A program made the position numbers and the translations under genes. The notes under the pieces were generated by a model. That model was given only the letters and a program-made list of their open reading frames with translations. It had not been told where the DNA came from and searched no databases. DNA of 64,000 bases, from positions 1-64,000 of the forward strand of contig CBCOSG010000001.1 in assembly GCA_965112735.1 (NCBI GenBank), in the 5' to 3' direction. The first letter of the stretch is position 1. Every line of letters starts with the position of its first letter. This document shows positions 24,400 to 42,108 of this stretch, one piece after another. Source of the stretch: Phaeosaccion multiseriatum (lineage: Eukaryota; Protista; Ochrophyta, other classes).

Positions 24400-25572
24400 G
24401 TGAATCTAATTAGACAATGGAGTGTTGCCTGGAGACGGCAAAATATAGTACAAATAATAAATTCTCATATCGTGGATTATCCTACTCCGGTTAATCTAAC
24501 CTATGCCTGGAGTTTTGGTGTAAGTGCAGGAATTTGCCTTGGAATTCAAATGATTACAGGTATTTTTCTGGCCATGCATTATACTCCTAATGTAGATTTG
24601 GCCTTTTCTAGCATTGAATTCTTCATGAGAAGTATCTCCAATGGGTGGTTGGTGCGTTATATGCACGCTAATGGCGCATCTTTTTTCTTTATTGTAGTAT
24701 ACCTCCACATTTTTCGAGGTCTATATTATACTTCATATACTCGACCTCGAAAAGCCTTATGGTTTTCAGGTTTGGCCATCTTTATTTTAATGATGGCCAC
24801 TGCATTCATGGGTTATGTATTACCTTGGGGTCAGATGAGCTTTTGGGGAGTAACTGTGATTACAAGTATGTTTTCCGCCGTACCTTTTTTTGGAAAGACT
24901 ATTGTAAAGTGGCTGTGGGGAGGCTACTCTATTGGTAATGCCACCCTTGTGCGTTTTTTTAGTCTGCACTTTGTGCTGCCTTTTTTAATTGCCGCAGCAG
25001 TATTCGTACATTTAAGCTTTCTACATCAAAATGGGTCAAATAATCCTTTGGGAGTATCTAGTAAGGTAGACGGTATCCGTTTTTATCCTTACTTTTACAC
25101 CAAAGATCTATTCAGTATTTCTGTGTTTTTGTTTGTTTTTGCCCTTTTCGTGTTTTTTTTTCCCAATCTTCTAGGCCATCCTGATAATTATATTATGGCG
25201 GATTCTATCAAAACTCCTCTCCATCTTGTACCGGAATGGTACTTTTTGCCCTTTTATGCAGTTCTTCGCTCTATTCCTCATAAAGTAGGTGGAATTTTAG
25301 CAATGGGTGCAAGTATTGGTGTTTTGTTTCTTCTTCCTTCTTTTCACCAGGGACGAATTCGAAGTGGGAGTTTTCAGCCCCTGCATCAACTTGTATTCTT
25401 CTGGACGGTAATTCTTTTTCTTCTTTTAGGTTGGGAAGGACAGGAAACCTTAGACGATATTTCTAAATACGTAGGTCCTTTTTTACTAATTGCTTACTTT
25501 GTGGTAGTTCTGCTAGGTTTCGGTTTAAGTTCTTACTTGCAAAATCAACTGCTTGATAAAAATCTAAGATAG
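24400..25572 (+). CDS. cob: apocytochrome b (GTG start)
   Basis: RYMHANGASFFF, GYVLPWGQMSFWG, PEWYFLP. Confidence 0.99.
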   Translation: MNLIRQWSVAWRRQNIVQIINSHIVDYPTPVNLTYAWSFGVSAGICLGIQMITGIFLAMHYTPNVDLAFSSIEFFMRSISNGWLVRYMHANGASFFFIVVYLHIFRGLYYTSYTRPRKALWFSGLAIFILMMATAFMGYVLPWGQMSFWGVTVITSMFSAVPFFGKTIVKWLWGGYSIGNATLVRFFSLHFVLPFLIAAAVFVHLSFLHQNGSNNPLGVSSKVDGIRFYPYFYTKDLFSISVFLFVFALFVFFFPNLLGHPDNYIMADSIKTPLHLVPEWYFLPFYAVLRSIPHKVGGILAMGASIGVLFLLPSFHQGRIRSGSFQPLHQLVFFWTVILFLLLGWEGQETLDDISKYVGPFLLIAYFVVVLLGFGLSSYLQNQLLDKNLR

Positions 25573-25707
25573 GTTAAATTAATAATGAGAACCTTTACGC
25601 GATTTAGCGTACTGTTCAAATCATTCAATTACGAAAGTAAATAGGGAAAGTAAGCAAAAAGAAAAAGAATACCTCCCGAGTCAAAATAGAGAAAATTTAT
25701 ACGTCCT

Positions 25708-26238
25708 ATGGGCACTAAAAAAAAATTTATTAGACCCTTCTTTAAGAATAGAAGCTTCTTAGAAAAGGTGGACCTATTCCTTTTTGCTTATTTCACTTGT
25801 ATTCTATTTACGATGGCAGTATTATCATCCCTTCTTGAAGTGGGATCCTTACTAAACTTTTTAAAGGGAAAGAAAAGTTTTCCCTCGCCGATAATCGGGG
25901 GAGTTACCGGTCTTATCGTGCTTTGCGCTATAGGACTCTTCTTTTTTGACCACAGGGTCAAACAAGATTCCGGGGTAACAGTAAACTTTGGAAAGTTTCA
26001 GGGATTAAGCCCCCTTTCCAAAGTAACATTTTCCCTCTTTTGGTTCACACACTATATTTTAGTGTACTTATTTGGAGAGGTTTGCGCCTATTATGGATGC
26101 AAGCAATTTTCTCATGTCTACCACCTCATACCAATCTCGGAGATGTACCCCTATGAACCCTATCTTGGGGCTTTGGGTATCTTGGGATTGTTGGCTGTAT
26201 GCTTCTACATTGACCCTCCACGGGAGAGGAAAGAGTAA
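25708..26238 (+). CDS. orf176, hypothetical ~4-TM protein, paralog of orf190; leader and start shared with nad11
   Basis: Paralogy with 2745..3317; 25644-25728 is nearly identical to 33201-33285. Confidence 0.8.
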   Translation: MGTKKKFIRPFFKNRSFLEKVDLFLFAYFTCILFTMAVLSSLLEVGSLLNFLKGKKSFPSPIIGGVTGLIVLCAIGLFFFDHRVKQDSGVTVNFGKFQGLSPLSKVTFSLFWFTHYILVYLFGEVCAYYGCKQFSHVYHLIPISEMYPYEPYLGALGILGLLAVCFYIDPPRERKE

Positions 26239-26336
26239 GAGTCCTGTAGACTTTTTATAAATTTTACTAAAGAAGAAGGACTAGTAAGAGCTTATGTTTC
26301 CCAATCTGCCTACTGCTTAAATAAAACAAAAACCTT

Positions 26337-26717
26337 ATGATTCAAACCCAAACCATGTTTCGCCTCGGAGATAATTCCGGGGTCCAAAGGCTTCGAAGTA
26401 TCAAAATAAAACCTTATCCACGAGGAGGTCAAGCTAAATTCGGTCAAGATCTTCTTGTGTCAATTCGCCGACTCAAGTCAAAGGCTACTCAGCGTTATGG
26501 CTTACGGAAGGGAGATAAACTTCGAGGATTTATTTTACACACTCGTGCTATTCAAAGACGTAAAAATGGATTGAACCTGCGTTTTGGTCACAATCGGGTA
26601 CTGTGCTTTACCAAAAATCAGAAAGTACTAGGTAGTAGAGTGTTTTATCCACTTCCAATAGAACTAAGAAAGCGTAAATTTATGAAGGTGGCCAGTATGG
26701 CTCCTATATGGGTGTAA
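26337..26717 (+). CDS. rpl14: ribosomal protein L14
   Basis: MIQTQT...DNSG, RFGHN, GSRVFYPLPIELR. Confidence 0.94.
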   Translation: MIQTQTMFRLGDNSGVQRLRSIKIKPYPRGGQAKFGQDLLVSIRRLKSKATQRYGLRKGDKLRGFILHTRAIQRRKNGLNLRFGHNRVLCFTKNQKVLGSRVFYPLPIELRKRKFMKVASMAPIWV

Positions 26718-27154
26718 TGCAATTGATTTCTTTAAGAAAAGACGTTCACTGCCAATTATTGACCCAGAGTATTGACCTAGCTAGTGTAAATAAGAAAAAC
26801 ACTCACCTTCCTTTACCTAGGCTTGTAGGAGGGAGCCCTTGCGGAGAAAACTCGCCTAGCCTTTGTTCATTGGTATTTATGGATGTGGTGCATGGAACTA
26901 AGCCGAAGATTTTGGGTCCTAGATCCGTTAATCCAGGTAGATGTCATTTAGGAGGTTGGGTTAACAAAAAGGAGGGCTACGGATTTTGGGTACTTATGCA
27001 GGTGGATATTCTTCCTCAGGTGGAAACTAAAATTGAATCTCGTTTAAGTCTACCTTCTGAGAAAAGCCTTTTGAATTTTGCGTCATTGTATTCCATGGTC
27101 TATAACCAACCTAAAATTCACATCTGGTGGCAATTCAAAAGTAGTTTTTGGTAG
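26717..27154 (+). CDS. rpl5: ribosomal protein L5 (highly divergent, short)
   Basis: Directly follows rpl14; LPLPRL, GTKPKI and ILPQ resemble L5 landmarks. Confidence 0.65.
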   Translation: MQLISLRKDVHCQLLTQSIDLASVNKKNTHLPLPRLVGGSPCGENSPSLCSLVFMDVVHGTKPKILGPRSVNPGRCHLGGWVNKKEGYGFWVLMQVDILPQVETKIESRLSLPSEKSLLNFASLYSMVYNQPKIHIWWQFKSSFW

Positions 27155-27305
27155 TTCATAACATCTTAGTAAGTTGGTAGTCCTGATTTTAGAGATAAAC
27201 TTAGTTCTACGGCTCTTCATGTGGCCATTTTCATAGTTTTCATAGGTAGATGACTAATTGTAAATATTATAAGTAAGACTTTATAAAAGCCATGTTGTTC
27301 TGTAT

Positions 27306-27420
27306 TGGCCCCTTTATAGGGGCCACAAAACAGGTGATGCCTGCCTGAAAAGAGTCCGTGGCATTTAGGAGGAAACTACAATACACTATGTTGTGTTGTG
27401 ATTTCCACCTAGAGGCCCCC
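27306..27420 (+). ncRNA. structured element A (hairpin - GGTGATGCC-N14-CCGTGGCATT - hairpin), upstream of trnR(ucg)
   Basis: 19-nt scaffold identical to element B; hairpins TGGCCCCT/AGGGGCCA and TAGG-GGAAA-TACAATACA/TGTGTTGTG-TTTCC-CCTA; RNA status is inferred. Confidence 0.5.
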
Positions 27421-27421
27421 C

Positions 27422-27495
27422 AGATTTGTAGCTCAATTGGATAGAGTGTCGGATTTCGGTCCCGAGGGATGTAAGTTCAAGTCTTACCAAATCTA
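27422..27495 (+). tRNA. trnR: tRNA-Arg(UCG)
   Basis: Cloverleaf, anticodon TCG. Confidence 0.92.
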
Positions 27496-27503
27496 AGTTT
27501 AAA

Positions 27504-27585
27504 GGAGAGGTGACCGAGTGGTTAATGGTGTCAGACTGTAAATCTGATGGAACTTCCTTCATAGGTTCGAATCCTATCCCCTCCT
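27504..27585 (+). tRNA. trnY: tRNA-Tyr(GUA)
   Basis: Cloverleaf, long variable arm, anticodon GTA. Confidence 0.95.
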
Positions 27586-27659
27586 GTGTGTAGGTTTTTT
27601 TCTGTCTTTTTGTCATTGTTGCATGGGTATTTTTGGATTTCAGTTCTCGTCTTTCCTTT

Positions 27660-29125
27660 GGTGACAACCCAGTTTTTGCTTTTGAACAAAGAAAAAAAAA
27701 GTTTTGGCGGGAAACTAAAACAAAAGTTCTGAGAAAAGTCTTTGATCTAAAAAATTAAAGAAAGTTTTGGTTGTCCGTTGATAATAAAAAAAATGAATAC
27801 CACAAAAAAAATCTATTCTAGAATTCCCTTGTCTGGGTGGCTAAAACGCTTTAAATATAAGACAAAACATATCGATTAGAAAGATTCTTCCCACTACAAG
27901 CACAAAGGCAGATATTTGGCTTCAGAAGGCTTGTCCACAGCCAAGAAGAAAATTCTATTTAAGCTTTCTATATAAAATCAAAAGATGAATTAAAATGTCT
28001 TTGTCAGTTTCGTCGATTTACAGGCTAAATTTAAGGAGAAAAGACAGGAGAGCTTTTGATCAACAAACTGTTCCCATAGAAACCAAAAGTCGACTTCGAT
28101 GCAAAATAGACACCGAAAGTACAAAAGCTTCAAAACTTTAATTCTTTACTAAAAAACCTAATTTTTTGATCTACACGATCCTAAAAAAAAATAAAAACTA
28201 TGTTTGTTAGTCTTGCCAAAGTTTAAGTATATTGGTGTACTTCTTGATTCCTACTGACCTATTGTATTATCACCCAGAAGCCTAATGCAAGGATAGGAAG
28301 GACTTATTTGATCAAAATGCCTCACTTATTAAGTTTTAGCATTAATCTACTCTAACTCAAGTTTTGACCCCTTATTTAAGCTTTTTACAGCCCTTAAAAC
28401 CGTCACTCAAATGCGGATAAATAAAGCTTTACCAATAGACAAGCTAAAGTTCTTTTAAGTTTTCATCAAATACAGGAAAATAAACAAAGTATTTCATCAA
28501 CACAGTTTAGAACTATTTGGTCTGTTCTTTTTTTGTAAGCTCAAGTCTTTTCTTAGTTAGTCAGCTTCTGGCCGAAGCTTAGCTTAATTTAACCCCTAAA
28601 GATACTTGAGAAATAATAATTTTCCCTAAATTAGTAGAATAAGATTGCCTGCAAGACTTAGACCACACCATAGAATCAAGTCAGACTTGGAGTGAAGTCT
28701 AGTTAAGAAAGAGGGGACTCTTAAGATAGCAGACTTGGTCGAAATTGAGATAAATAGAAGTGTGGAAGACCAAAGATTGAGAAAGAAAACTATGTCTTTC
28801 GTCAATTAGAAACCGATTGTTTAAAAAATCCTTTGCAGTGTTTGATTTTCATTGAGCCTTAACCCCATTTTACGCCTAGAGACTAAATATTTTTTAAAAG
28901 GCACCGAAGAGAAGGTTAGATTGACAGTGAAACATTTAGTGGACGGAAGGTTTATTCTCTGGACCAAAGATATAAGAGAACCTTTTCTATCGGTTCCATA
29001 AAATAAAGTTTATTAGTTCTAAAAGTATAAAGCACTTTACTTCATCTCAAATGGAGGCTATAATGTTGGTTATTAGGCAGCTGAGACTTTGGTAACTAGA
29101 CTCAGCATCCCAATCATGCGCTAGT
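27660..29125 (+). pseudogene. decayed C-terminal half of nad11 (nad11b)
   Basis: Colinear peptide remnants across stops and frameshifts: NPVFAFEQR..W, FDL..ESFGCPLI..KIY..P..GWL, FLIPTDLLYYHP....RK, TEEKVRLTVK, ETLVTRLSIPIM. Confidence 0.65.
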
Positions 29126-29411
29126 TAAAGTATAAAATTTCCTTGATTTGGTTATGATCTCTTAGTTAAATATGAGGAAAAATTGCTCTTTCCGTCTAAT
29201 AGAAATGAGTTAACAAACTCATTGATGGACATCTTTAATCAATCTTTTCTTTTTGATTAAGTTTTTAGGGAACAGACCCGAACAAAAAAGAGGAAAAAAA
29301 GAGGTACACTTAAAAAAGCCAAAAGTCTGCTCTCGTAATTAAACCAATCCTTTGTACTGAACCAAAACTCTGTAAGTGCTCGAAAAAACCTGTTCCTTAC
29401 ATTAGATTGTG

Positions 29412-29537
29412 TTTTCTCATATGAGAGGGCTACCAAATGCGAGTCCCATCTTTAGCACGAAACCCCAACCCTGTAGGATCTGGAGTGTAATTTGCAAATG
29501 GGCCCTACATACTGGCTGGTCCGGGAACCGGGGAAAT
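29412..29537 (+). rRNA. candidate divergent 5S rRNA
   Basis: Loop C-like CCCATCTTTAGC, TACTG...CGGGA domain-gamma-like motif, closing TTTCTC/GGGAAA; just upstream of rns. Confidence 0.3.
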
Positions 29538-29629
29538 TTATTTATCCACAAGAATCTAAATCATAAAATTAAAATAAAGCTTTATAGACCACATCCCCCT
29601 TGTTTATTTCTTGGAAATAAAAAAGATCA

Positions 29630-30939
29630 AAGACTTGAGTTTGATCCTGGCTCAGGATGAAGGCTAGGAGTATGCCTAACACATGCGAGTGTTGCCTTCT
29701 CTTAGAAGAAGAAAGCGCGAACGGGTGAGTAATACTTGGAAATCTGCCCTTTCTGAAGAAAGTAAGTAGGGAGTCTTCCCCACTTTTGCCTAATTTAGAC
29801 AAAAAAGAAAGGAAGAATCCTCGAAGGATTAAGGAAGTAGGAAGGATGACAGCCTTCCTATTCAAAGATCCTTAGTTGGTCTGTGAGGTCGACCAGCCAC
29901 ATTGGAACTGAGACAAGGTCCAAGCCCCTGTAAGGGGCCAGCAGTGAGGAATCTTGGACAATGAGCGGAAGCTTGATCCAGCAATATTCCAAGGGGGAAG
30001 AAGGCTAAACTGGTTGTAAACCCCTCTCCCGTGGAAAGATTCAGACGCCATTCACAGGGGTAGTCCCGGCCAATTCTCGTGCCAGCAGTCGCGGTAATAC
30101 GAGGGGGGCAAGCCTTATCCAGAATGATTGGGCATAAAGGGTTCGTAGAGGGCATTTTCCTAGATCGTAAGATAAATTCTACCCCCCAAGGGTATGACTT
30201 TTGACAAAACCGGGATGCTAGAGTCGAAGAGAAGATAACAGAATCACTTATTTAGGGATAAAATCCGTAGACATAAGTGGGAATACCAGAGGCGAAGGCG
30301 GTTATCTAGATTCGCACTGACCTTCAGGGACTAAAGTGTGGGGAGCAAACAGGACTTGACCCCCTGGTAGTCCACACCCTAAAATATCAGCCTAGCTGTT
30401 TAGACTGAGAAGTTTAAGCATCTTCCCTGCTAAGGCTAAGGCTGCGCCTGAGAAGTACAGCATTCAGATCTGAAATTCAAAGGAATTGGCGGGGGCTTAT
30501 ACAAGTGGTGGAGCATGTGGTTTAATGCGATGCTACGCGCCAAACCTTACCAGTTCTGGAATACTTCTTTCCCTTTTCGGCCTCGGAGATAAGACCAAAG
30601 ACAGGAAGTACAGGTATTGCATGGCTGTCGTCAGTCCGTGTCTTAGGATGTTAAGTTCACTCTTATAACGGACGCAACCCTCTTGTGGCAGATAAAGCTC
30701 TTACCAAAGTTTTAATTGGTGAGTCCAACTTTGTCCATACTCCACATACTGCTTAGACTACGGTTTAAGAGGAAGGCGAGGATGAAGACAAGTCCTTATG
30801 GTCCTTATGAACTGGGCTACACACGTGCTACAATGGAAAGGACAATGAGTAGGAAAGATAAAATCAGTCTTTGCCAAACTTGAACACTTTCTTTGGTTCA
30901 GACTGAGGCCTGCAACTCGGCTTCACGAAGGCGGAATCA

Positions 30940-30972
<33 letters not shown>

Positions 30973-31140
30973 CTGTACCTAGGCTCTGTACAAACCGCCC
31001 GTCACATGTTGGAAGCCGGGCTTGCTCGAAGAATGTCAATGAAATGCTTTGTCTATTCTCTTGGATTTGAAAGTAGGCTTGGTAACTGAGATGAAGTCGT
31101 AACAAGGTAGTCGTAGAGGAATCTGCGGCTGAATTCAAAG
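29630..31140 (+). rRNA. rns: small subunit rRNA (ends approximate)
   Basis: GAGTTTGATCCTGGCTCAG, GTGCCAGCAGTCGCGGTAATAC, AAGTCGTAACAAGG; no anti-SD tail. Confidence 0.98.
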
Positions 31141-31382
31141 AAATAAGGTCTTGAACCTCAGGCGGTATAGAATTTAAGAATGAAAGTTTTCTTTATAAAG
31201 GTGAAACATAAGCTTCTGGAACCTATGTCAGTCTTAAAACACAATATAGGGTTTTGGTATTTTTTAGGCATCAGCATCACTGAGATTTTGAAGCTCTTGG
31301 TGAGTATGCTTATTTTTTTTTGGTTTTGTGTACTAATGAACTTCTTTAATTTGATAAAAAATTAAACTAATGAGCTCTCTAC

Positions 31383-32225
31383 TTGTACTTGCAGTTTTTA
31401 GTCAATTCTCCTGCAAAATCTTGGTTTAAAATTTTAAGCCCTGCTTTCATTTTGACTTTAGGAATTCAAACTCTTTTACTGCCGCTACCGTATATGTACC
31501 CAAATTCGGCCTCGTTCATTTTTAAAGCGAGTCTTTGTGTGGTTTGGGTGTTTCAATATCAAAAATGGTCGATGATACTAAAATTTGAAAATGCCAAAAC
31601 TCGGTCTAAAGAGGGCCTTTATGTAGTCTCTCTTTACGCGGACAGTCTTACCCATCCAATCTTTGGCAAACTTCAGACATATCTGTATTGGTCTTTTGTA
31701 TTGGGGATTCTTCTGCCGCGGCAGTATTCAAATATGGCCTACTTTGTAGGTGTAATTTTCGTATTAATGTCCATTTACTTCTTGCCAGGATATCTGCGGG
31801 CAACGCGGCGGCTTTTTAATGAATGTTTTTTGGACCCCCGTGTACTCTATGAGAGAGGGTTCACGAAAAAGAGGTTAGTGTGGGAGCTAACTGTGGAACA
31901 CTTAAAGAGGGCCGGAATTTTCATTATAGGGGGCCTACTTGTCGACGTGGGGATCGGAAAGTACCTTTATGGCCCAGACGGGAGGTCGTCGATGCAAAAC
32001 TTATTTTCTTCGACGTTTGCTAACTTCACTGCGGACACTCACGAAAGTGTCACAAAATTCCGATTCCTCGAGAGAAGAGGAGTCCCCTCAGAGCTATTGA
32101 AGACGGCGTCCGGGAAAGTAGATGTAGGGGCAGTAAATTGGTTCCTTCAGGACTATAATACCGTTCTTGATTATGTAGGAGAAGAGTATAGAGCCCAACT
32201 AGAGGATACAATCGAAAAACCTTAA
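31383..32225 (+). CDS. orf280, hypothetical multi-TM protein with conserved soluble C-terminal domain (TTG start)
   Basis: Full-length paralogy with 36902..37761 (EGxYVxSLYxDSLxH, GFTKKRxVWE, DGRSSxQN, NFTADT, KTASGK, AQLED..EKP). Confidence 0.8.
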   Translation: MYLQFLVNSPAKSWFKILSPAFILTLGIQTLLLPLPYMYPNSASFIFKASLCVVWVFQYQKWSMILKFENAKTRSKEGLYVVSLYADSLTHPIFGKLQTYLYWSFVLGILLPRQYSNMAYFVGVIFVLMSIYFLPGYLRATRRLFNECFLDPRVLYERGFTKKRLVWELTVEHLKRAGIFIIGGLLVDVGIGKYLYGPDGRSSMQNLFSSTFANFTADTHESVTKFRFLERRGVPSELLKTASGKVDVGAVNWFLQDYNTVLDYVGEEYRAQLEDTIEKP

Positions 32226-32269
32226 TGGGTAGATTACAATACTAGAAAAGTAGAATAATCCTAAGTAAA

Positions 32270-32575
32270 TTATCTTGTGTTCTACGCTATTAAGCTATAG
32301 AATTATAAGTGAGTCTACTGCGCGAAGCTTAGGCAGTGGAGGTAGTTTGATTTGTGAAGTTTTTTAAATCTAAGATTCACGTAGTTTTTTCATATACTGG
32401 TGGACTAAAGCACTTGGCCAGCTTGTTAGGCTCATGATCTAAAAGTCGTAGGTATAAGTTCTACCTTTGCCCGCAATATCCTGTTTCCTGACTTTCTGGG
32501 ATTTAAGATGAAGACCAAAAAATATATATTAAATTAGCTACACCCCACTCCACTTCTCTTGTGAGGGAAAAAATA
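32270..32575 (+). repeat. dispersed duplicate of rps8 3' end + pseudo-trnfM (32399-32473) + rps10 5' end
   Basis: Homologous to the reverse complement of about 6775-7080. Confidence 0.88.
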
Positions 32576-32661
32576 AGGAAAAAAGAAGCAAACAGTAATT
32601 TATAGAACCTAGATTTGTTTCAGAGGAGCAAATACGGACTTCGTGATATTTAGGAAGAACC

Positions 32662-32814
32662 ATGCCACAATTTGATCAAATCACCTTTTTTACTCAAATT
32701 CTTAATTTGGGTTTGTGTTTTTTTGGATTTTATTTTTTCTTTGTTTTCTACTACCTGCCCAGTCTTAGTGCCTCTTTAAAATTACGCAAGATTTTTAAGG
32801 ATCTTCCCCGTTAA
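32662..32814 (+). CDS. atp8: ATP synthase subunit 8 (50 aa)
   Basis: MPQFDQITFFTQ, hydrophobic helix, LP...LKLR; below the ORF-track size cutoff. Confidence 0.95.
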   Translation: MPQFDQITFFTQILNLGLCFFGFYFFFVFYYLPSLSASLKLRKIFKDLPR

Positions 32815-32837
32815 GTATCTGATGTTCGAAGCCCAGT

Positions 32838-32911
32838 CGGGAAATGGCGCAGCTTGGTAGCGCATCTGTTTTGGGAACAGAAGGTCATGTGTTCAAATCA
32901 CATTTTCCCGA
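32838..32911 (+). tRNA. trnP: tRNA-Pro(UGG)
   Basis: Cloverleaf, anticodon TGG. Confidence 0.95.
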
Positions 32912-33010
32912 ATACTTAGGTATTTGCCTACGAACTTCAGGAGCCTAATAGAAAACCTCAAGGTATCTCTTGCATCACATATTTTGGTAATTTTAGTGAA
33001 TGCGATGGGA

Positions 33011-33081
33011 GACCGGATAGCATAAGGGCAATGCCTTGGATTGCAAATCCAATTATGGGAATTCGACTTTCCCTCCGGTCT
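33011..33081 (+). tRNA. trnC: tRNA-Cys(GCA)
   Basis: Cloverleaf, anticodon GCA. Confidence 0.92.
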
Positions 33082-33103
33082 AATACTTGTAAAAAAGTAG
33101 AAA

Positions 33104-33198
33104 CCAAGATCGTACTGATATTTGTATGAAATTATACCATAGGTATTTATAACCTAATATGGAAGCCATTCGTCTGAATCAGGTAGGGGTAAAAAACC
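33104..33198 (+). pseudogene. 5' fragment of nad9 with in-frame stop
   Basis: Homologous to 39248-39342; CAA changed to TAA. Confidence 0.85.
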
Positions 33199-33264
33199 TT
33201 GGGAAAGTAAGCAAAAAGAGAAAGAATACCTCCCAAGTCAAAATAGAGAAAATTTATACTTCCT

Positions 33265-34161
33265 ATGACCACTAAAAAAATATTTATCAACCATCAGCTT
33301 GTTTTTGTTGAAGAATTTTCCTCAGTATTACAAGCATGTAGTAGTTTAGGCATAGAACTTCCTCGATTTTGTTATCATCCCTTATTAAATATCGCGGGAA
33401 ATTGTCGTTCCTGTCTAGTAGAAGTTAGCCAAGGTCCAAAACCTCAGATGAGTTGTGCCTTCCCTATTTTAGGAGGCGGACGATTTTTTCTTCATAGTCC
33501 TTTGGTACGAAAAGCCCGAGAAACAGTTTTAGAGTTCAATCTAGTAAACCACCCTCTAGATTGCCCTATTTGTGACCAAGGAGGGGAATGCGATCTCCAA
33601 AATCAAAGCTTTCACTTCGGCAGTGACAAAACACGGTACGCTGAAGTAAAGCGTACGGTCAAAGAGACTTTTCTAGGTCTAGGTATAAAAAGTTTGATGA
33701 CTCGTTGCATACATTGCACTCGCTGTGTGCGGTATTCTAAGGAATGGTTGGGAGACAGTAATTTGACTGCCAATGGCAGAGGCTCTCACATGATAGTCGA
33801 AGCTTACTCCTCAACTCCCTTAACCACTTTAGCCTCAGGCAACGTAATAGATCTATGCCCCGTAGGGGCAGGTCTAAAAAAGGTGGTTAAAATTCTTGGG
33901 GAGAGTTGGGATTTTGTCGTCCGCTTGTGGCGAGACCTTCCTTTGGTATTGGCTTATCTTTCACTTATAATCTTATACACCTGCATTGGACTCCTCGGAG
34001 TCCGCCATATGTATGTGTATCTTGGCTGGGTCTATGCTACTTTTTTAGTAGTGTGGGGACTGTCACTTTACAAACTATGGCGGTGGGAGCCGTATAAAAT
34101 AATAGGACCATATTTGGTCCTTGTTTTGTACGTCACTTTTAAGATTTGGGTTTCCTCTTAG
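33265..34161 (+). CDS. nad11: NADH dehydrogenase subunit 11, N-terminal Fe-S half, fused to a ~96-aa unrelated hydrophobic tail
   Basis: PRFCYH, AGNCRSCLVE, HPLDCPICDQGGECDLQ, RCIHCTRCVR, DLCPVGA; homology stops after CPVGA. Confidence 0.95.
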   Translation: MTTKKIFINHQLVFVEEFSSVLQACSSLGIELPRFCYHPLLNIAGNCRSCLVEVSQGPKPQMSCAFPILGGGRFFLHSPLVRKARETVLEFNLVNHPLDCPICDQGGECDLQNQSFHFGSDKTRYAEVKRTVKETFLGLGIKSLMTRCIHCTRCVRYSKEWLGDSNLTANGRGSHMIVEAYSSTPLTTLASGNVIDLCPVGAGLKKVVKILGESWDFVVRLWRDLPLVLAYLSLIILYTCIGLLGVRHMYVYLGWVYATFLVVWGLSLYKLWRWEPYKIIGPYLVLVLYVTFKIWVSS

Positions 34162-34219
34162 GAGCTGACAAGATTTTTCTTCCATTTGTGAAGTTTGTGA
34201 CAAGCTTCAAGCAAAATAA

Positions 34220-35893
34220 AGAAAATCTTCACAAAGGGCATGGAGGGAATGCCTAGGGGCCCAGCCTCTGTAGACGTAGACAACAACGAAAGCTCGGAGG
34301 AAGGTCTTCGACCTGTGCACTTCGACCTTCTACCTTGGAAAACCATTCCGTTTGAGGAAAAACAGGCCAGTAAAGCCTGCAAAGAAGAGGGCAGACAAAC
34401 TGAAACATCTAAGTAATCTGCTTAAGAGAAATCAACCGAGATACCGTAAGTAGCGGTGAGCGAAAACGGTGTAGGCTCTCTCCTAGACGACCTTGAAAGA
34501 TCCAAATTAAAAAACGACTCCAGCTCAATAAAACATTGGATGGAGAAGAAAACCATAGAAGGTACAAGTCCCGTAGGGGAAGAAAAGGAGAGGATTCAAG
34601 TACTTTTCTGGCGATAGACAAGGAATATTGGGGAGCCATCCTCAAAGCCTAAATAGACTGGGCCACCCATAGTGAACAAGTATCGTGAGAGAAAGGTGAA
34701 ACAGAGATTTCTGCTGTGAAATGTCCTGAAACTCCCTGCCTTTTAGGTGTTGAAGCTTTGTGGAAGTGACAGCCTACCTTTTGTATAATGGGTCAGTGAG
34801 TAAAAGATTAGGGGCAAGCTTAAGTTTAGGAAGGCAAAGGTCAATCGAGGAGTAAAACTTCGTGGAGTCCCAATTTTTTTTACCCGAAACCGACTGAGCT
34901 AAGATTGAACAGGTTGAAAAAGACAAGGCAACTTTCTTTGGAGGACCGAACCCGTGTATGTGGCAAAATACTGGGATGATTTGATCTTAGGGGTGAAAGG
35001 CCAATCAAAGTCGGAGATAGCTGGTTTTCTGCGAAATCTATTGAAGTAGAGCGTCTTAATGGGAAATCCGGGGTAGAGCACTGTCGTAGGAAAGGGGAGG
35101 CAAAATCTTACTGACTTATGGCAAACTGCGAATACAGGATACGTCTTCAATCAAGGCAGACAGACCATGGGTGCGAAGGTCCTTGGTCAAAAGGGAAACA
35201 GCCCAGATTGATGGTTAAGGTCCCCAAAGGAAAGGAAGTGAAGAAGGAGGTGACGAGCTAAAGACAGCCAGGAGGTAGGCTTGGTAGCAGTCATCCTTTA
35301 AAGAATGCGTAACAGCTCACTGGTCGAAGTTTTTTGCGCCCACAATGTTTGGGACTAATCTTTCCTACCGAAGCCTCAAACCCTACAGGGTGGTAGCAGA
35401 ACCTTCCGTAGGTCGAGGAAGATGAGGGGCAACCTTCATTGGAGATATCGGAATCGAGAATACTGACATGAGTAGCAACAAACCAGGAGGATCCTGGTGG
35501 CCTTAAATTCAAGGGTTTCCACGACAGATTTCTTCTTCGTGGGGGCTTGAGCTAATCTCAAGCCATAAAGACGGTCCCTAAGACTGCTGACGAAAGCCAG
35601 GGTTGATGGGAGATCTTAGACAGGACGAAGCTGGCAGAGGAAGTAGAGGAGTATAGCTGGTCTCCTCTGCTTTAGCTCAGCTTCCAGGAAATACTTCTAG
35701 GAGCGGCACCGTATCGTAAACCGACACAGGTGAATGGGTGGAGTACACTCAGGCCTTTTGAGAGAACCGTGTTGAAGGAACTCGGCAAAATGACTCCGTG
35801 GCTTCGGTAGAAGGAGGAAGCCTTTGTAGGCTTGGCACTAAAGTGGGAGCGGCGACTGTTTAGTAAAAACACAGGACTCTGCGAAGTTGTAAA

Positions 35894-35931
<38 letters not shown>

Positions 35932-36017
35932 CGGAAGACCCGAAAGTGGAAGCTTTTAGGGAGAATGCCCAGTAAACGGCGGCTGTAACTCTGACGGTCC
36001 TAAGGTAGCAAAACTGA

Positions 36018-36048
<31 letters not shown>

Positions 36049-36124
36049 TGTAACGACTGCTCCGCTGTCTCCAACACGGACTCAGTGAAATTCCCATGGT
36101 CGTGAAGAGGCGACCTCGCTGCAG

Positions 36125-36158
<34 letters not shown>

Positions 36159-36463
36159 TTTGAGCTGGGAAGCATGACATAGGTTGCGTAGTAGTAGGTG
36201 GGAGGTTATGCCGCAGATGAAAGACCACCCTCCTTCAGTCTAGCTTTCTTCACCTGACTTGGGACAGGCTCAGACGGGTAGTTTGGCTGGGACGGCAGCC
36301 TCCTAAAGAGTAACGGGGGTACGCAAAGGTACACCCTTCCATGAAGGAAGAAAAGGCGGAATGGCTTGATGTGTGCCTGACTGTAAGACTCACAAGTCGA
36401 ACAGAGACGAAAGTCGGCCATACAGATCCGGTGGATGTGCATATGGGCACTTCACCGCTCATA

Positions 36464-36499
<36 letters not shown>

Positions 36500-36900
36500 T
36501 CTCGAGAGCTCCTATCGACGGAAGGGTTTGGCACCTCGATGTCGACTCATCACATCCTGGAGGAGAAAAAGCTTCCAAGGGTTGGGCTGTTCGCCCATGA
36601 AAGTGGTACGTGAGTTGGGTTTAGAACGTCGTGAGACAGTTTGGTCCCTATCTACTGTGGACAACAATCTAAGGGAAGAAATTCTAGTACGAGAGGACCG
36701 AATTTCGGGGATCCATGGTGTACCGGTTGTGTGAGCACATGCAGTGTCGGGTAGCTACATCTCTAGAAGAGAATGGCTGAAAGCATCTAAGCCAGAAACT
36801 TGTCCTCAAGCATTGTCTAGGCCTCGTTTTAGACGAAAACGTGAATAGGAGGGTAGTGAAAGTCGTGTAAGCGGTGTAGCTGATCCTTACTAATTAGGCT
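34220..36900 (+). rRNA. rnl: large subunit rRNA (ends approximate, no introns)
   Basis: GAAACATCTAAGTA, GACGGAAAGACCCCG, GGGATAACAGGCT, sarcin-ricin loop AGTACGAGAGGAC. Confidence 0.98.
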
Positions 36901-36901
36901 T

Positions 36902-37761
36902 ATGATGTTTAAATACATGCTGCGTCGTATGTGGAAACGAATAACAGATTTGGATACAGAGGTTTGGTTTGTAATACTGTTTGTAGCCTACTTTTTAACC
37001 TTTGTCATTTCCTCCCTTGGACTGTTTGAGGGTAGGTTTGATATCGTGTGTTCACTAGTGCAATTCAGCGTCCATCTGGGGTGGATTTTTTACTACCATA
37101 AAGAGGTAATTTTACCCAAGTTTAGAAAGGATAAAACCCGGTGTAGAGAGGGCAGTTATGTCGCATCTCTTTACCAGGATAGTCTGGGACACGAAGGTTT
37201 GGCAAAAGTACAAACTCTCTTGTATTCGTCATTTATCCTCGGAATCGGTCTACCACCAAAATACTCTATTTTGTTTTATCTCATAGGTTTACTCTCCTTA
37301 TTGGCCTGTCTCTATTTACTGCCGGCGTATGTGCGATCAACCACACGACTGTTTCAGGAGTGTTTTTTGAATCCTGGAGTACTCCACGCTAAAGGGTTTA
37401 CAAAAAAAAGAATAGTGTGGGAAGTGGCTGTAGAACACGGCAAAAGAATTCAAATAATTGTAGCGGGGGGCTAGTGGCAGATGTGTGGGTCGGAAAGTTC
37501 TTTTACGGTCTAGATGGAAGGTCGTCGCTGCAAAATTTCTATTCTTCGACGTTCGATAACTTCACTGCGGACACTCAAGAGAGTGTCACGAAATTCCGGG
37601 CCCTCGAAAGCAGGAGAGTCCCCTCAGACCTGATGAAGACGGCGTCGGGGAAACTGGATATAGGAGCAATAGATTGGCTTCTTCAAGAGTATAACGCGGC
37701 TCTTGATCATTACGGAGAACTATATAAGGCTCAACTTGAAGATCGAGTCGAAAAACCTTAA
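36902..37761 (+). CDS. orf286, paralog of orf280, split by a one-base frameshift in the G6 run (37465-37470)
   Basis: Adding one G yields KRIQIIVAGGLVADVWVGK, colinear with orf280 KRAGIFIIGGLLVDVGIGK. Confidence 0.78.
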
Positions 37762-37802
37762 TAGTGTAGAGATAGGTAAGTTGCTAAAGGGGTATAATAC
37801 CC

Positions 37803-37940
37803 CTAAGTAAATTATTTTGTCTTCTATGCTATTAAGCTATGGAATTATAAGTGAGTCTACTGCGCGAAGCTTAGGCAGTGGAGGTAGTTTGATTGGTAAA
37901 GTTTTTTAGACCTAGGACTCACATAGTCTTTTCATACCAT
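37803..37940 (+). repeat. dispersed duplicate of rps8 3' end
   Basis: GGAATTATAAGTGAGTCTACTGCGCGAAGCTTAGGCAGTGGAGGTAGTTTGATT is shared with rps8 and with about 32300-32352. Confidence 0.88.
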
Positions 37941-38014
37941 GGTGGAGTAGAGCAGTTGGCCAGCTTGTTAGGCTCATGATCTAAAAGTCGTAGGTTCGAA
38001 TCCTACCTCCGCCC
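37941..38014 (+). tRNA. trnM: initiator tRNA-fMet(CAU), intact copy
   Basis: Complete cloverleaf, anticodon CAT, initiator-type A11-U24 D-stem (GAGC/GCTT). Confidence 0.88.
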
Positions 38015-38201
38015 GTATGCATGAACGAATAAATCCCCAGTCTAACGAGGAAATCCTCGGTTTAAAGTCTTACATCTGCTACATTAGTCCCAGGTCCGGA
38101 TCTGGGCCATCTACCTATATTCCCATTATAGCCAATATTGGCCATATAGGCCGATACTAGCTAAAATAAAGAGGATAGATAAATGGGTTTCTCTTGCAAG
38201 C

Positions 38202-38342
38202 TTCCGCCGAAGATACCTCTTTCGAGGAAGGGGTTAGAAGGCGGAAAAGGGTGATGCCAACCCCCAAGGAAGCCGTGGCATTCAGTAAGCAACCTTGGCA
38301 TTTAAGCATCAGTCTGATCCATTGGTGCTTAGAAAGGTTCCT
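38202..38342 (+). ncRNA. structured element B (hairpin - GGTGATGCC-N14-CCGTGGCATT - hairpin)
   Basis: Scaffold identical to element A; hairpins TTCCGCC/GGCGGAA and AACCTT..TAAGCATCAGT/ATTGGTGCTTA..AAGGTT; RNA status is inferred. Confidence 0.5.
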
Positions 38343-38409
38343 GGATTTGTATGGATAGGCCGTCAGATTTCTGTCCCGGCGGTGGTAAGTTCAAATCTTA
38401 CCAAATCCA
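38343..38409 (+). ncRNA. tRNA-like (t-)element derived from trnR(ucg)
   Basis: Perfect acceptor stem GGATTTG/CAAATCC and T-arm GTAAG-TTCAAAT-CTTAC; D-arm and anticodon arm degenerate. Confidence 0.8.
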
Positions 38410-38410
38410 A

Positions 38411-38779
38411 ATTTGCGGCTTACATCAGCTTGTTCGTTATCCCCGTATACCTCAGTCCTCTCGTAGCAAATCTCCCGCTTTAAAGTCTTGCCCTCAAAAA
38501 AAGGGCCTTTGTTTAAAAATTTACTTACGAAAACCCAAAAAGCCTAACTCTGCCCTACGAAAGTTATGCCGAGTACGCCTAAGTACAGGCCGTCGAATCA
38601 GCGCCTACATTCCTGGCGAGGGCCACAACCTTCAGGAATTTAATTCTGTTTTGATTCGAGGAGGTCGAGCTAAAGATCTTCCTGGTGTCCGTTACCACGT
38701 CATTCGGGGCAAGTATGACTGTTTGGGTTTAATAAAGCGTACCACTTCTCGGTCCAAATATGGGGCCAGAAAACCATAA
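38411..38779 (+). CDS. rps12: ribosomal protein S12 (probable ATT start; upstream in-frame ATG at 38351 lies inside the t-element)
   Basis: [35 protein letters not shown]. Confidence 0.97.
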
Positions 38780-38782
38780 AAA

Positions 38783-39217
38783 ATGAGATTGAGCCAAAGT
38801 TCTGAAGGAAGTATTTTTTGTAAGCATCTCATTCGCCGCGGGGGTCGACTTCGAGCTCACAGCCTCGTAGGTAGCAGTCTGCGCTACCTCTACGAGCATC
38901 AACCGAAAAAGGCGGCTTATGTGTTTTTTCATGCTCTTCAACAGACTGAACCTATGGCTCAGGGAAAAACTTTTCCTGGCCGAAGAAAAAAGCAAGCCAA
39001 AGTACGATGGATTTCTTTCCCTCTCTGGAAAAAACGTCGTCAATACCTTAGTCTCCACTGGATTCTTCGTACGACTCCGAAGGGTCCACTATCTAAAAAT
39101 CTAGGTTCTTCCTTGTGTAAAGCCAGTCAGTCGACTGGCGAAGCCACTTTTCTAAAGCAGGCTTATCATCAACAAAGTTTAGAAGGTCGGCCTTATGCCA
39201 ACTATCGCTGGCACTAA
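38783..39217 (+). CDS. rps7: ribosomal protein S7 (divergent)
   Basis: Follows rps12; RRQYLSLHWI, C-terminal RPYANYRW. Confidence 0.88.
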   Translation: MRLSQSSEGSIFCKHLIRRGGRLRAHSLVGSSLRYLYEHQPKKAAYVFFHALQQTEPMAQGKTFPGRRKKQAKVRWISFPLWKKRRQYLSLHWILRTTPKGPLSKNLGSSLCKASQSTGEATFLKQAYHQQSLEGRPYANYRWH

Positions 39218-39269
39218 AAACTGAATCGGCTTTTGTGTATTAGAGGGCCAAGATCGTACTGATATTTGT

Positions 39270-39797
39270 ATGAAATTGTACCATAGGTATTTACAACCTA
39301 ATATGGAAATTATTCCTCTGAGCCAGGTGCGGGTAAAAAACCAGGAGGTGTGCGCTTATCTGCCTTTTCCTCCTCAGTGTTTTTCAACTTTGGTTTATCT
39401 AAAGTATCATACAAACACTGGGTATAAAATTTTATCTTGTATCTCCGGAGTGGATTACCCTTGCCGACAAAGTCGGTTGGAAGTGGTCTACGAAGTATTA
39501 AGTATCAAGTATAACCAACGCCTCCGTTTGCGAACTCTGTTTCAACCTAAAACCTTTAGATTTTTAGGTCTAGATTCAGTAACTAATATTTATATGGGCG
39601 CCAATTGGTGGGAAAGAGAAGTTTGGGATATGTTTGGTATCCTTTTTGAAAATCACCCCAGTTTACGGCGAATCTTAACGGATTACGGCTTTCAAGGCCA
39701 TCCTTTACGAAAAGATTTCCCATTGACAGGCTACGAAGAACTTAGGTACGACGATAGTGTGAAGAGAGTGGTAGGTAATCTTATCCAAAATTTATAG
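39270..39797 (+). CDS. nad9: NADH dehydrogenase subunit 9
   Basis: GVDYP, WEREVWDMFG, RRILTDYGFQGHPLRKDFPLTG. Confidence 0.98.
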   Translation: MKLYHRYLQPNMEIIPLSQVRVKNQEVCAYLPFPPQCFSTLVYLKYHTNTGYKILSCISGVDYPCRQSRLEVVYEVLSIKYNQRLRLRTLFQPKTFRFLGLDSVTNIYMGANWWEREVWDMFGILFENHPSLRRILTDYGFQGHPLRKDFPLTGYEELRYDDSVKRVVGNLIQNL

Positions 39798-39864
39798 AGG
39801 GAAAATATATTGGTTGTTGTGGACATTAGTGGGCCTGTATCATAAAGTTAAGCCAAACTTTGGT

Positions 39865-39935
39865 TGGAGTATAGCCAAGTGGAAAGGCAGCCGTTTTTGG
39901 CGCGGCCATCCAAGGTTCAAATCCTTGTACTCCAT
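39865..39935 (+). tRNA. trnQ: tRNA-Gln(UUG)
   Basis: Cloverleaf, anticodon TTG. Confidence 0.93.
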
Positions 39936-39950
39936 AAAAGAATGCACAAT

Positions 39951-40018
39951 TGAATACTATAGAGTCAATGCCTTGGATTGCAAATTCTATCAGGAGGATT
40001 TTATTTGGTTTCCAGCCT
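39951..40018 (+). pseudogene. degenerate tRNA-Cys
   Basis: CAATGCCTTGGATTGCAAAT is identical to trnC at 33029-33048; the rest cannot fold. Confidence 0.7.
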
Positions 40019-40033
40019 AGTTAGTAGATAAAT

Positions 40034-40105
40034 GCAGAAGTAACTCAAAGGTAGAGTGCAAGCTTGCCAAGTTTGAAGCTGAGGGTTCAAATCCCTTCTT
40101 TTGCT
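40034..40105 (+). tRNA. trnG: tRNA-Gly(GCC)
   Basis: Cloverleaf, anticodon GCC. Confidence 0.93.
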
Positions 40106-40178
40106 GGGTCCATAGCTCAGTTGGAAGAGCATTGGCCTTCTAAGCCAAACGTCATAGGTTCGAGTCCTATTGGACCCT
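40106..40178 (+). tRNA. trnR: tRNA-Arg(UCU)
   Basis: Cloverleaf, anticodon TCT. Confidence 0.94.
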
Positions 40179-40408
40179 GATCAGCCACTCCCGGAGGTTT
40201 GTCTTCATCATAGGCTGACAAGCCTTTTCTAAATAGGGAAAACTAACTCCAATAAAATTAGTTGGATTATTTTCCTCCTTGATCTCAGTATTTCTAATTA
40301 TCATTCTACTTATGTGTACAGGGGCTCAAATTTATATTCTTCTTATAGAGTTGAAGATTGAAGAGATATTTTTAGAAAGACCCAGCTGAATGTATTGTAT
40401 CAAATCTT

Positions 40409-40924
40409 ATGCGCAAAAGACGACTTTATATATCCGACAAAGTTTGTTGTGTTATTGAAAACCAAATTTTACGAATCGAAGGACCTTTGGGGGAAAAATC
40501 CTTAGTTCTTCCTCGTGGTTTAGGCCTCCGTTGGAGTCAAGGCCGTTTAGATTATCTACCAAATTGGCGACTGCGAAAACTAGAAGCTAGTTTCTACGAC
40601 GTTTTAAAAAAAACCATCCAAGGAGTGCATCAAGGTTTTGTCTTACATTTAGATATTTTAGGTGTGGGATATAAAGCGGAGGTCCAAGATAAGGATTTAC
40701 GCCTAAAATTGGGCAAAAGCAAAATAGATGTCATGGATTTAGGCTATGGTATTGATGTTAAATGCCTAAAACCTCGACATATGTTTTTGCAAGCCGCAGA
40801 AGGAAATTTTCTCCGTCAAACTGCTGCTAATATCCGTAGTCTTCACCCTCCGGAAGTTTATAAGCAAAAGGGCATTTTTTATCGAGGAGAAAAATCTGTG
40901 ACCAAACAAGGGAAAGTAAATTAA
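40409..40924 (+). CDS. rpl6: ribosomal protein L6
   Basis: IEGPLG, GVGYKA, PPEVYKQKGI. Confidence 0.95.
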   Translation: MRKRRLYISDKVCCVIENQILRIEGPLGEKSLVLPRGLGLRWSQGRLDYLPNWRLRKLEASFYDVLKKTIQGVHQGFVLHLDILGVGYKAEVQDKDLRLKLGKSKIDVMDLGYGIDVKCLKPRHMFLQAAEGNFLRQTAANIRSLHPPEVYKQKGIFYRGEKSVTKQGKVN

Positions 40925-40968
40925 AGAATTACGCCTCTACATATGCTAAAGAAAAAAGATAGGGGGTC

Positions 40969-41004
40969 TAGGCTCTAGTAGTAGTACCGTACTACTTAAT
41001 CCTT
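40969..41004. other. 36-bp spacer between the IR arms forming an imperfect hairpin (candidate telomere loop or concatemer junction)
   Basis: AGTAGTAC-C-GTACTACT at 40980-40996, plus AGG/CCT pairing with mismatches and bulges. Confidence 0.85.
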
Positions 41005-41048
41005 GACCCCCTATCTTTTTTCTTTAGCATATGTAGAGGCGTAATTCT

Positions 41049-41564
41049 TTAATTTACTTTCCCTTGTTTGGTCACAGATTTTTCTCCTCGATAAAAAATG
41101 CCCTTTTGCTTATAAACTTCCGGAGGGTGAAGACTACGGATATTAGCAGCAGTTTGACGGAGAAAATTTCCTTCTGCGGCTTGCAAAAACATATGTCGAG
41201 GTTTTAGGCATTTAACATCAATACCATAGCCTAAATCCATGACATCTATTTTGCTTTTGCCCAATTTTAGGCGTAAATCCTTATCTTGGACCTCCGCTTT
41301 ATATCCCACACCTAAAATATCTAAATGTAAGACAAAACCTTGATGCACTCCTTGGATGGTTTTTTTTAAAACGTCGTAGAAACTAGCTTCTAGTTTTCGC
41401 AGTCGCCAATTTGGTAGATAATCTAAACGGCCTTGACTCCAACGGAGGCCTAAACCACGAGGAAGAACTAAGGATTTTTCCCCCAAAGGTCCTTCGATTC
41501 GTAAAATTTGGTTTTCAATAACACAACAAACTTTGTCGGATATATAAAGTCGTCTTTTGCGCAT
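41049..41564 (-). CDS. rpl6: ribosomal protein L6 (IR copy)
   Basis: Mirror of 40409..40924. Confidence 0.95.
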   Translation of the reverse strand: MRKRRLYISDKVCCVIENQILRIEGPLGEKSLVLPRGLGLRWSQGRLDYLPNWRLRKLEASFYDVLKKTIQGVHQGFVLHLDILGVGYKAEVQDKDLRLKLGKSKIDVMDLGYGIDVKCLKPRHMFLQAAEGNFLRQTAANIRSLHPPEVYKQKGIFYRGEKSVTKQGKVN

Positions 41565-41794
41565 AAGATTTGATACAATACATTCAGCTGGGTCTTTCTA
41601 AAAATATCTCTTCAATCTTCAACTCTATAAGAAGAATATAAATTTGAGCCCCTGTACACATAAGTAGAATGATAATTAGAAATACTGAGATCAAGGAGGA
41701 AAATAATCCAACTAATTTTATTGGAGTTAGTTTTCCCTATTTAGAAAAGGCTTGTCAGCCTATGATGAAGACAAACCTCCGGGAGTGGCTGATC

Positions 41795-41867
41795 AGGGTC
41801 CAATAGGACTCGAACCTATGACGTTTGGCTTAGAAGGCCAATGCTCTTCCAACTGAGCTATGGACCC
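41795..41867 (-). tRNA. trnR: tRNA-Arg(UCU) (IR copy)
   Basis: Mirror of 40106..40178. Confidence 0.94.
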
Positions 41868-41939
41868 AGCAAAAGAAGGGATTTGAACCCTCAGCTTCAA
41901 ACTTGGCAAGCTTGCACTCTACCTTTGAGTTACTTCTGC
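41868..41939 (-). tRNA. trnG: tRNA-Gly(GCC) (IR copy)
   Basis: Mirror of 40034..40105. Confidence 0.93.
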
Positions 41940-42037
41940 ATTTATCTACTAACTAGGCTGGAAACCAAATAAAATCCTCCTGATAGAATTTGCAATCCAA
42001 GGCATTGACTCTATAGTATTCAATTGTGCATTCTTTT

Positions 42038-42108
42038 ATGGAGTACAAGGATTTGAACCTTGGATGGCCGCGCCAAAAACGGCTGCCTTTCCACTTGGCT
42101 ATACTCCA
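42038..42108 (-). tRNA. trnQ: tRNA-Gln(UUG) (IR copy)
   Basis: Mirror of 39865..39935. Confidence 0.93.

Follow-up and report, generated by a model that had tools for sequence, protein, structure and literature searches.

We examined the mitochondrial gene nad11 of the ochrophyte Phaeosaccion multiseriatum in a 64,000-nucleotide (nt) stretch of DNA, hereafter the window (GenBank assembly GCA_965112735.1, contig CBCOSG010000001.1, positions 1 to 64,000 of the forward strand). The open reading frame (ORF) of nad11, at 33265-34161 (+), encodes 298 amino acids (aa) and continues for 96 codons beyond the iron-sulfur (Fe-S) half of Nad11, a subunit of respiratory complex I. This Fe-S half is intact, the C-terminal half of the subunit is encoded in the nucleus, and the 96-residue tail, hydrophobic and without a homolog in the searches described below, has atypical codon usage and overlies an array of predicted RNA stem-loops just upstream of the large-subunit rRNA gene, rnl. 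Our preferred explanation, to which we give about an even chance of being right, is that the tail is a young overrun that arose when the nad11 stop codon was displaced into a structured nad11-rnl spacer. The splitting of nad11 is known already; a 96-residue membrane-like orphan extension on a mitochondrial Fe-S half was not found in the literature searched. The extension belongs to a subunit whose final position is remote from the membrane.

An intact Fe-S half and its nuclear partner

Residues 1 to 202 of the ORF (33265-33870, +), ending in DLCPVGA, hold the 2Fe-2S (N1b), N5, and N4 cluster domains of Nad11/NuoG/NDUFS1. Over residues 6 to 202, Pfam recognizes in order Fer2_4 (PF13510, E = 7.9e-9), NADH-G_4Fe-4S_3 (PF10588, E = 4.7e-15), and Fer4_Nqo3 (PF22117, E = 3.8e-22). 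The ligand sets are complete, i.e., four Cys for N1b, one His and three Cys for N5, and four Cys for N4, and all 12 ligands (C36, C47, C50, C64, H96, C100, C103, C109, C148, C151, C154, and C198) occupy invariant columns of a 40-sequence alignment. Both analyses bear out the first-pass annotation of the window, which had described the N1b, N4, and N5 ligand motifs as intact up to DLCPVGA. A 151-nt record from a public sequencing run (X6) is ~86% identical to the nad11 core, with 21 differences; 11 of the 14 differences listed fall at third codon positions, the pattern that would be expected under purifying selection of the core. This record ends at 33842, upstream of the tail, and none of the divergent records extends over the tail. 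A further strain is represented in run X7 at ~99% identity.

A second, nuclear N-terminal half was not found, the best nuclear matches (E of at least 0.003) being to another Fe-S protein on contig C6. Because the nuclear genome has no second N-terminal half, the mitochondrial nad11 must work. The C6 matches of the Nad11 Fe-S half, at 926553-927282 (+), are weak (E = 0.003 and 0.13) and may involve the N-terminal ferredoxin-like domains of an [FeFe]-hydrogenase.

The C-terminal half, in turn, was located on nuclear contig C11 (G000:C11, ~2598023-2601363, +; loci L082-L085 and L104-L108). This multi-exon locus matches PF22151 (Fer4_NDSU1) and PF00384 (molybdopterin) and is the sole match to the two domains in the 67-Mb genome. 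It was read exon by exon. Its first open stretch starts with an Ala/Gly/Arg/Ser-rich, presequence-like leader and goes on with GALTSKPYAYTARPWELK; past the leader, the match starts at GALTSKPYAY. As read from the two genomes, the nuclear half begins exactly where the mitochondrial ORF departs from the family, at CPVGA. No remnant of the C-terminal half was found in the mitochondrial genome, either by tblastn (E of at least 0.26) or with Pfam; a 1.5-kb gene-free region at 27594-29125 showed no tblastn similarity to Nad11 C-terminal halves and had RNA fold z-scores of −0.4 to +1.3, and at this sensitivity the idea of a decaying C-terminal half there is not supported.

In the PX clade, nad11 is split between the mitochondrion, which retains the N-terminal half, and the nucleus, whose C-terminal half bears a transit peptide (Oudot-Le Secq & Green 2011; Sevcikova et al. 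2016, PMC4824035). Judged by its sequence, the gene studied here is a split nad11 of this type, known from the brown-algal (PX) clade, in which the Fe-S half is partnered with a nucleus-encoded, imported C-terminal half. The first-pass annotation had stated that splitting at this boundary is known in ochrophytes, which agrees with our finding of a nuclear half that starts GALTSKPYAY after a leader. The best named cox1 matches, at 76-80% identity (pairwise values), were Schizocladia, brown algae, and Phaeothamnion. The split nad11 is a textbook example of a mitochondrial gene divided between two genomes; in the present case the sequences of both halves are at hand and meet to the residue.

The junction between core and tail

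Past CPVGA the canonical ALTSKPY is absent, and the earlier observation that LTSKPY is replaced by 96 residues is thus confirmed. Residues 202 to 217 (AGLKKVVKILGESWDF; 33868-33915, +) align without gaps to the canonical linker ALTSKPYAFxARPWEL, with A, K, and W in common (MAFFT), a likeness that is only suggestive of a diverged vestige of that linker. We also considered that the whole tail might be a remnant of the canonical Nad11 continuation. This was rejected on a negative profile comparison (hhalign probability, 0.3%), leaving the gapless A/K/W likeness of the first 16 residues.

Six A residues (A6, 33876-33881) lie close to the start of the tail, within the heptamer A_AAA_AAG (33876-33882), which is in phase with the reading frame. 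According to the sequence and stop map of this segment (33876-33890, +), the −1 frame past the heptamer reads GGT GGT TAA, with the stop at 33888-33890, and would yield a 209-aa product.

The window is the start of a mitochondrial concatemer (contig C17) of >216 kb with a unit of ~56 kb (direct repeat spacing, 56,060), and the junction and A6 run are the same in seven of the eight concatemer copies of nad11. The junction is also identical in a 2,971-nt, depth-200 contig of public run X1 (0 differences) and, over 33822-33972, in a 151-nt record of run X6, which comes from another study (0 differences, 0 gaps). The four public runs compared consist of contigs, which cannot show transcript ends, and none of the runs containing this stretch is recorded as RNA. 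A sequencing error at the junction, named as one possible refutation when the fusion was first noted, is excluded by the A6 run in seven copies together with the independent X1 and X6 contigs. The eighth nad11 copy (C17:215833-216738, −; locus L093) lies close to where the contig ends. It carries a 5-nt insertion immediately past CPVG and, within the tail, a 7-nt tandem duplication (GGGAGCC), and it is open for 209 aa. The two insertions are probably noise at the contig end, heteroplasmy being a possible alternative.

Searches for relatives of the tail

The orphan tail proper comprises residues 203 to 298 and, with its TAG stop (34159-34161), occupies 33871-34161 (+). It has no Pfam match, and no homolog was found by a tail-only word search of proteins, by scanning metagenome contigs for tail peptides, or by a six-frame search of the organism's own mitochondrial and nuclear genome. 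An exhaustive phmmer search of 1.84 billion protein representatives gave two matches only, both to trypanosomatid FAZ1 repeat proteins; these were rejected as spurious, a short G-x-S-W...W-R-[DE]-L motif having been summed over 9-15 repeats. In the ESM Atlas, the best score (0.83) and the recognition value (1548) were both within the range of shuffled sequences. The first-pass annotation was therefore right to call the tail new, given the negative protein, metagenome, and own-genome searches. Its suggestion that the tail may be a captured accessory membrane ORF was not supported, with BLASTP E values of at least 0.28 against orf190, orf176, and orf280.

Mitochondrion-sized relatives of the core end soon after CPVG. 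The closest among 5.8 billion proteins (P0002, 66% identity, 210 aa) stops 9 residues past CPVG, with a tRNA 40 nt downstream. It comes from an AT-rich metagenome contig of 1,785 nt (JGI Ga0485826_0155792, locus L001) with the gene order nad7, two tRNAs, nad11, tRNA. This contig represents the nearest sampled lineage and has unusual Nad11 core motifs in common with the genome studied here (LGLGIKSLMTRCI, GSHM). Among the 120 best matches, 23 mitochondrion-sized N-terminal halves (200-216 aa) end 2-15 residues past CPVG, 17 of them at exactly 13 (ALTSKPYAFxARx). Also among these 120, one group of 12 ends 32 residues past CPVG, and a eustigmatophyte nuclear N-terminal half has its own unrelated extension.

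Codon usage and RNA structure of the tail

The synonymous codon usage of the tail, expressed as mean ln relative synonymous codon usage (RSCU), is −0.014, equal to the minimum of 93 conserved-gene windows (0.123 ± 0.054). Third-position G amounts to 0.25 versus 0.17 ± 0.035 in those windows, only one of which matches the tail in this respect. Three-base periodicity is weak, and the reading frame is barely distinguished from another frame. Codon usage values like those of the tail are also seen in an antisense ORF within rnl.

RNA folding of the region is unusually strong, with a z-score of −4.76 over 351 nt and of −3.96 over the 288 coding nt of the tail, compared to −0.80 ± 1.03 (minimum, −2.91) for 35 conserved-gene windows; most spacers are near 0. 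The source of this signal is an array of predicted stem-loops at 33975-34169 (+) that overlies the last 65 tail codons. The array comprises stem-loop 1 at 33975-34020 (−19.0 kcal/mol), stem-loop 2 at 34023-34065 (−16.6 kcal/mol), stem-loop 3 at 34091-34132 (−21.6 kcal/mol), which includes a terminator-like hairpin at 34104-34121, and stem-loop 4 at 34132-34169 (−14.3 kcal/mol), which holds the stop codon. Codon usage and RNA structure thus both speak against an old coding region in the tail. Rfam searched at a permissive threshold over 33800-34300 returned nothing, i.e., no intron or known RNA family. A candidate rRNA processing stem between the tail or spacer and the rnl 3′ flank was rejected, the pairing being no better than that of shuffled sequence. 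Elsewhere in the window, the spacer at 37762-37940 (+), just upstream of trnM(cau), has a fold z-score of −4.6 versus −0.6 to +1.3 in the other spacers tested; it belongs to a repeat family shared with 32250-32473.

A displaced stop as the proposed origin of the tail

Under the displaced-stop explanation, the ancestral nad11 would have been short, with its stop 2-15 codons past CPVG, and the present tail region would have been its 3′ flank, a structured leader before rnl. We infer both how the stop came to be lost and that the tail is young. One possible route is a point change of the stop near its usual position, favored by the gapless linker alignment of residues 202 to 217; another is a one-base change in the A run at 33876-33881, where a product read in the −1 frame would be 209 aa long, within the size range of the relatives, and the eighth, error-bearing copy does read 209 aa. 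With the stop lost, the frame would have been extended by ~85-95 codons across the structured spacer, as far as the TAG at 34159. The resulting extension would be lineage specific and T/G-rich and, because of this composition, hydrophobic. Constraint at the RNA level on the stem-loops would slow sequence change and help a chance open frame persist.

The translation and fate of the tail can likewise only be inferred. As no in-frame stop precedes the TAG, the tail is probably translated, and its hydrophobicity would make co-translational membrane insertion likely. In established structures, the N4 region of Nad11 sits high on the matrix arm of complex I. Since the subunit occupies this position and the nuclear half supplies the segment after CPVGA, the tail would be expected to be trimmed or tolerated, and it is probably one or the other rather than a built-in part of complex I. 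If it is junk of this kind, a displaced stop would have turned a structured spacer into a membrane-like peptide, revealing how much an essential Fe-S subunit can tolerate.

Several observations weigh against a neutral overrun. Ninety-six open codons are expected by chance in only ~0.6-1.7% of cases; when the tail was shuffled 5,000 times with dinucleotides preserved, 30 shuffles stayed open, and within the rRNA genes a stretch of at least 96 open codons begins at 1.1% of positions. About 40 tail codons are one mutation away from a stop, so the frame must be either young or under selection. The codon usage of the tail also resembles that of the genome's other lineage-specific ORFs, which are possibly real proteins. 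As to hydropathy, the mean of the tail (0.92) exceeds that of all 52 chance open stretches of at least 60 codons in the genome (maximum, 0.68). Charge-free runs of 22, 22, and 14 residues are present, with charges confined to the parts between them, and two runs of at least 22 residues arose in 148 of 20,000 residue shuffles (P ~ 0.007). By its charge and hydropathy pattern, the tail looks like a real three-helix membrane segment.

The first-pass annotation had reported three hydrophobic stretches. Using Kyte-Doolittle 19-residue means with classical thresholds, we recovered all three, with peaks of 2.3, 1.5, and 1.8, but the second is only borderline. Segment 1 (residues 225 to 246; 33937-34002, +) is charge free with a hydropathy of up to 2.3, segment 2 (residues 249 to 270; 34009-34074, +) is charge free at ~1.5, and segment 3 (residues 279 to 297; 34099-34155, +) reaches ~1.8 with one Lys within. 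Three hydrophobic windows arise from the tail composition alone in 13% of shuffles. The charges of the loops are consistent with an N terminus that lies in the matrix. AlphaFold2 modeled the tail of the whole protein as four helices (pLDDT, ~64-76) in a low-confidence prediction (pTM, 0.40).

Alternative explanations

The tail could be a selected, co-translationally inserted three-helix membrane segment, N terminus in the matrix, which would hold the Fe-S half at the inner membrane while the complex is assembled and then either stay in place or be released by a protease. We consider this unlikely, even if it would account for a frame open beyond chance, a hydrophobicity above that of all chance ORFs, the two 22-residue charge-free runs with their flanking basic loops, and the helical AlphaFold2 prediction. 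Moreover, both gene copies have the tail and neither genome has a tail-less N-terminal half, so the cell must live with it. However, a segment maintained by selection is difficult to reconcile with the lack of homologs, with short N-terminal halves that all do without a tail (including that of the nearest relative), with codon usage and three-base periodicity unlike those of conserved genes, and with a sequence that doubles as a stem-loop array. A 22-residue linker, furthermore, could hardly span the distance from the N4 region to the membrane, and the nuclear half already provides the segment that follows CPVGA. On these sequence features, a working anchor or assembly tether appears less likely than a neutral overrun. 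The more specific proposal of a translated three-helix inner-membrane segment serving as an assembly anchor, and then proteolytically released or housed in a remodeled complex I, is similarly doubtful. If true, it would be the first membrane-anchored 75-kDa subunit and a case of a membrane domain created de novo from an rRNA leader or spacer; a tail that is kept and used would mean that the matrix arm of complex I can be assembled in a new manner.

The tail might also be unmade, or made only in part, if the nad11-rnl precursor were cut at the stem-loops so that the mRNA ended before the TAG and translation were truncated. Stem-loops acting as mitochondrial RNA end or processing signals, and mitochondrial mRNAs that lack a stop, are known in other lineages. 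The four strong predicted stem-loops at 33975-34169, one of them terminator-like, lie directly upstream of rnl and fold with a z-score of ~−4, as such a model would predict. A cut at the first hairpin would nevertheless leave ~35 tail codons in the message, and no long-range pairing with the rnl 3′ flank was detected. We rate this reading as doubtful.

A recombination event joining nad11 to part of some other ORF, giving a chimera of the cytoplasmic male sterility (CMS) type or one with an accessory membrane ORF, is quite improbable. Dispersed repeats and orphan membrane ORFs do abound in the genome, and the codon usage of the tail is like that of these ORFs. The tail nonetheless has no DNA or protein similarity elsewhere in the mitochondrial or nuclear genome, there is no repeat at the junction, and no intact nad11 copy exists alongside.

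Still less probable is a dual product, in which a −1 slip on A_AAA_AAG would lead through two Gly codons to the TAA at 33888 and a 209-aa protein, non-slipping ribosomes making the 298-aa form. Precisely where core and tail meet, the heptamer is in the right phase and the −1 stop follows two codons on, the sole tRNA-Lys has the anticodon UUU, and 209 aa is the size of the relatives. In-phase copies of the heptamer, however, occur seven more times in other ORFs, including rpl2, so the motif is not avoided; no compact stimulatory hairpin lies 5-9 nt downstream; and a Lys-rich C terminus is ordinary in the relatives.

Finally, that the fusion is an assembly or sequencing artifact, an indel in the A run hiding the true stop, can be set aside for practical purposes: the assembly does hold homopolymer errors (nad5 has T6 here versus T7 in three other copies) and one nad11 copy with 5-nt and 7-nt insertions, but A6 is present in seven of seven matching copies, in the depth-200 X1 contig, and in the 151-nt X6 record.

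Genomic context of nad11

The gene order around nad11 is trnP/trnC, nad11, rnl. The two tRNA genes upstream, trnP(ugg) at 32837-32912 (+) and trnC(gca) at 33010-33082 (+), were identified by ARAGORN and Rfam, and rnl (34222-36911, +; Rfam RF02541, 1774 bits) starts 60 nt past the nad11 stop. Directly upstream of trnP-trnC-nad11 is a 50-aa ORF (32662-32814, +; start, MPQFDQ...) that is atp8-like as judged by eye only.

Together with rns, rnl, and several tRNAs, nad11 lies in a perfect inverted repeat of 15,507 nt (arms 25477-40983 and 40990-56496); the second, identical nad11 ORF is in the other arm at 47812-48708 (−). C17 holds about four units, their lengths varying by tens to hundreds of bases (nad11 spacing of 55,947, 55,982, and 55,864).

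In the window, nad5 is broken at 10388-10416 (−) into ORFs 10399-11550 and 9461-10357. This copy has T6, whereas T7 is found at C17 positions 66333, 127539, and 178182. The frameshift is an assembly or homopolymer error; T7 restores the frame, and no guide or recoding mechanism is needed. In one C17 unit the nad5 region is inverted (127539, + strand), and this opposite orientation is compatible with flip-flop isomers arising by way of the 15.5-kb inverted repeat or with the assembly of mixed isomers. A 373-aa ORF at 21491-22612 (+) has no Pfam match at E ≤ 1e-5, and its mean ln RSCU of 0.07 is nearer to that of conserved genes than is the case for other orphan ORFs.

Comparison with known systems

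The heptamer at the junction recalls that of Escherichia coli dnaX (tau/gamma), which has the same A AAA AAG sequence and phase, a −1 stop within two codons, and a single tRNA-Lys(UUU). In contrast to dnaX, no stimulatory elements were found at the nad11 heptamer, which is common in other genes here.

Chimeric mitochondrial ORFs of the plant CMS type likewise consist of part of a respiratory gene fused in frame to sequence of no known origin with hydrophobic helices. Here, by contrast, there is neither a junction repeat nor a donor, and the Fe-S half comes from the chimera alone, with no intact gene copy beside it.

In eustigmatophytes, the nuclear N-terminal half carries a "novel C-terminal extension" that is conserved within the class (PMC4824035). 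Their split Nad11 resembles the present case in that the Fe-S half is followed by a lineage-specific, nonhomologous C-terminal extension, of ~70 residues in Trachydiscus minutus (P0020, 272 aa). In eustigmatophytes, however, the two halves are distributed the other way round, with the N-terminal half nuclear and the C-terminal half mitochondrial, and the split is an independent event. The P0020 extension has no stretch matching the tail described here, and its hydropathy peaks at 1.39 versus 2.3.

The closest counterpart is the split nad11 of the PX clade (Phaeophyceae, Xanthophyceae, Phaeothamniophyceae). The break falls in both cases just past the last N4 ligand, the N-terminal half is in mitochondrial DNA, and the C-terminal half is encoded in the nucleus, where it begins at the linker behind a leader; the best named cox1 matches are compatible with an affinity to this clade. 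The difference lies in the mitochondrial product: the other mitochondrion-sized N-terminal halves, of 200-216 aa, end 2-15 residues past CPVG, whereas that of P. multiseriatum extends to 298 aa.

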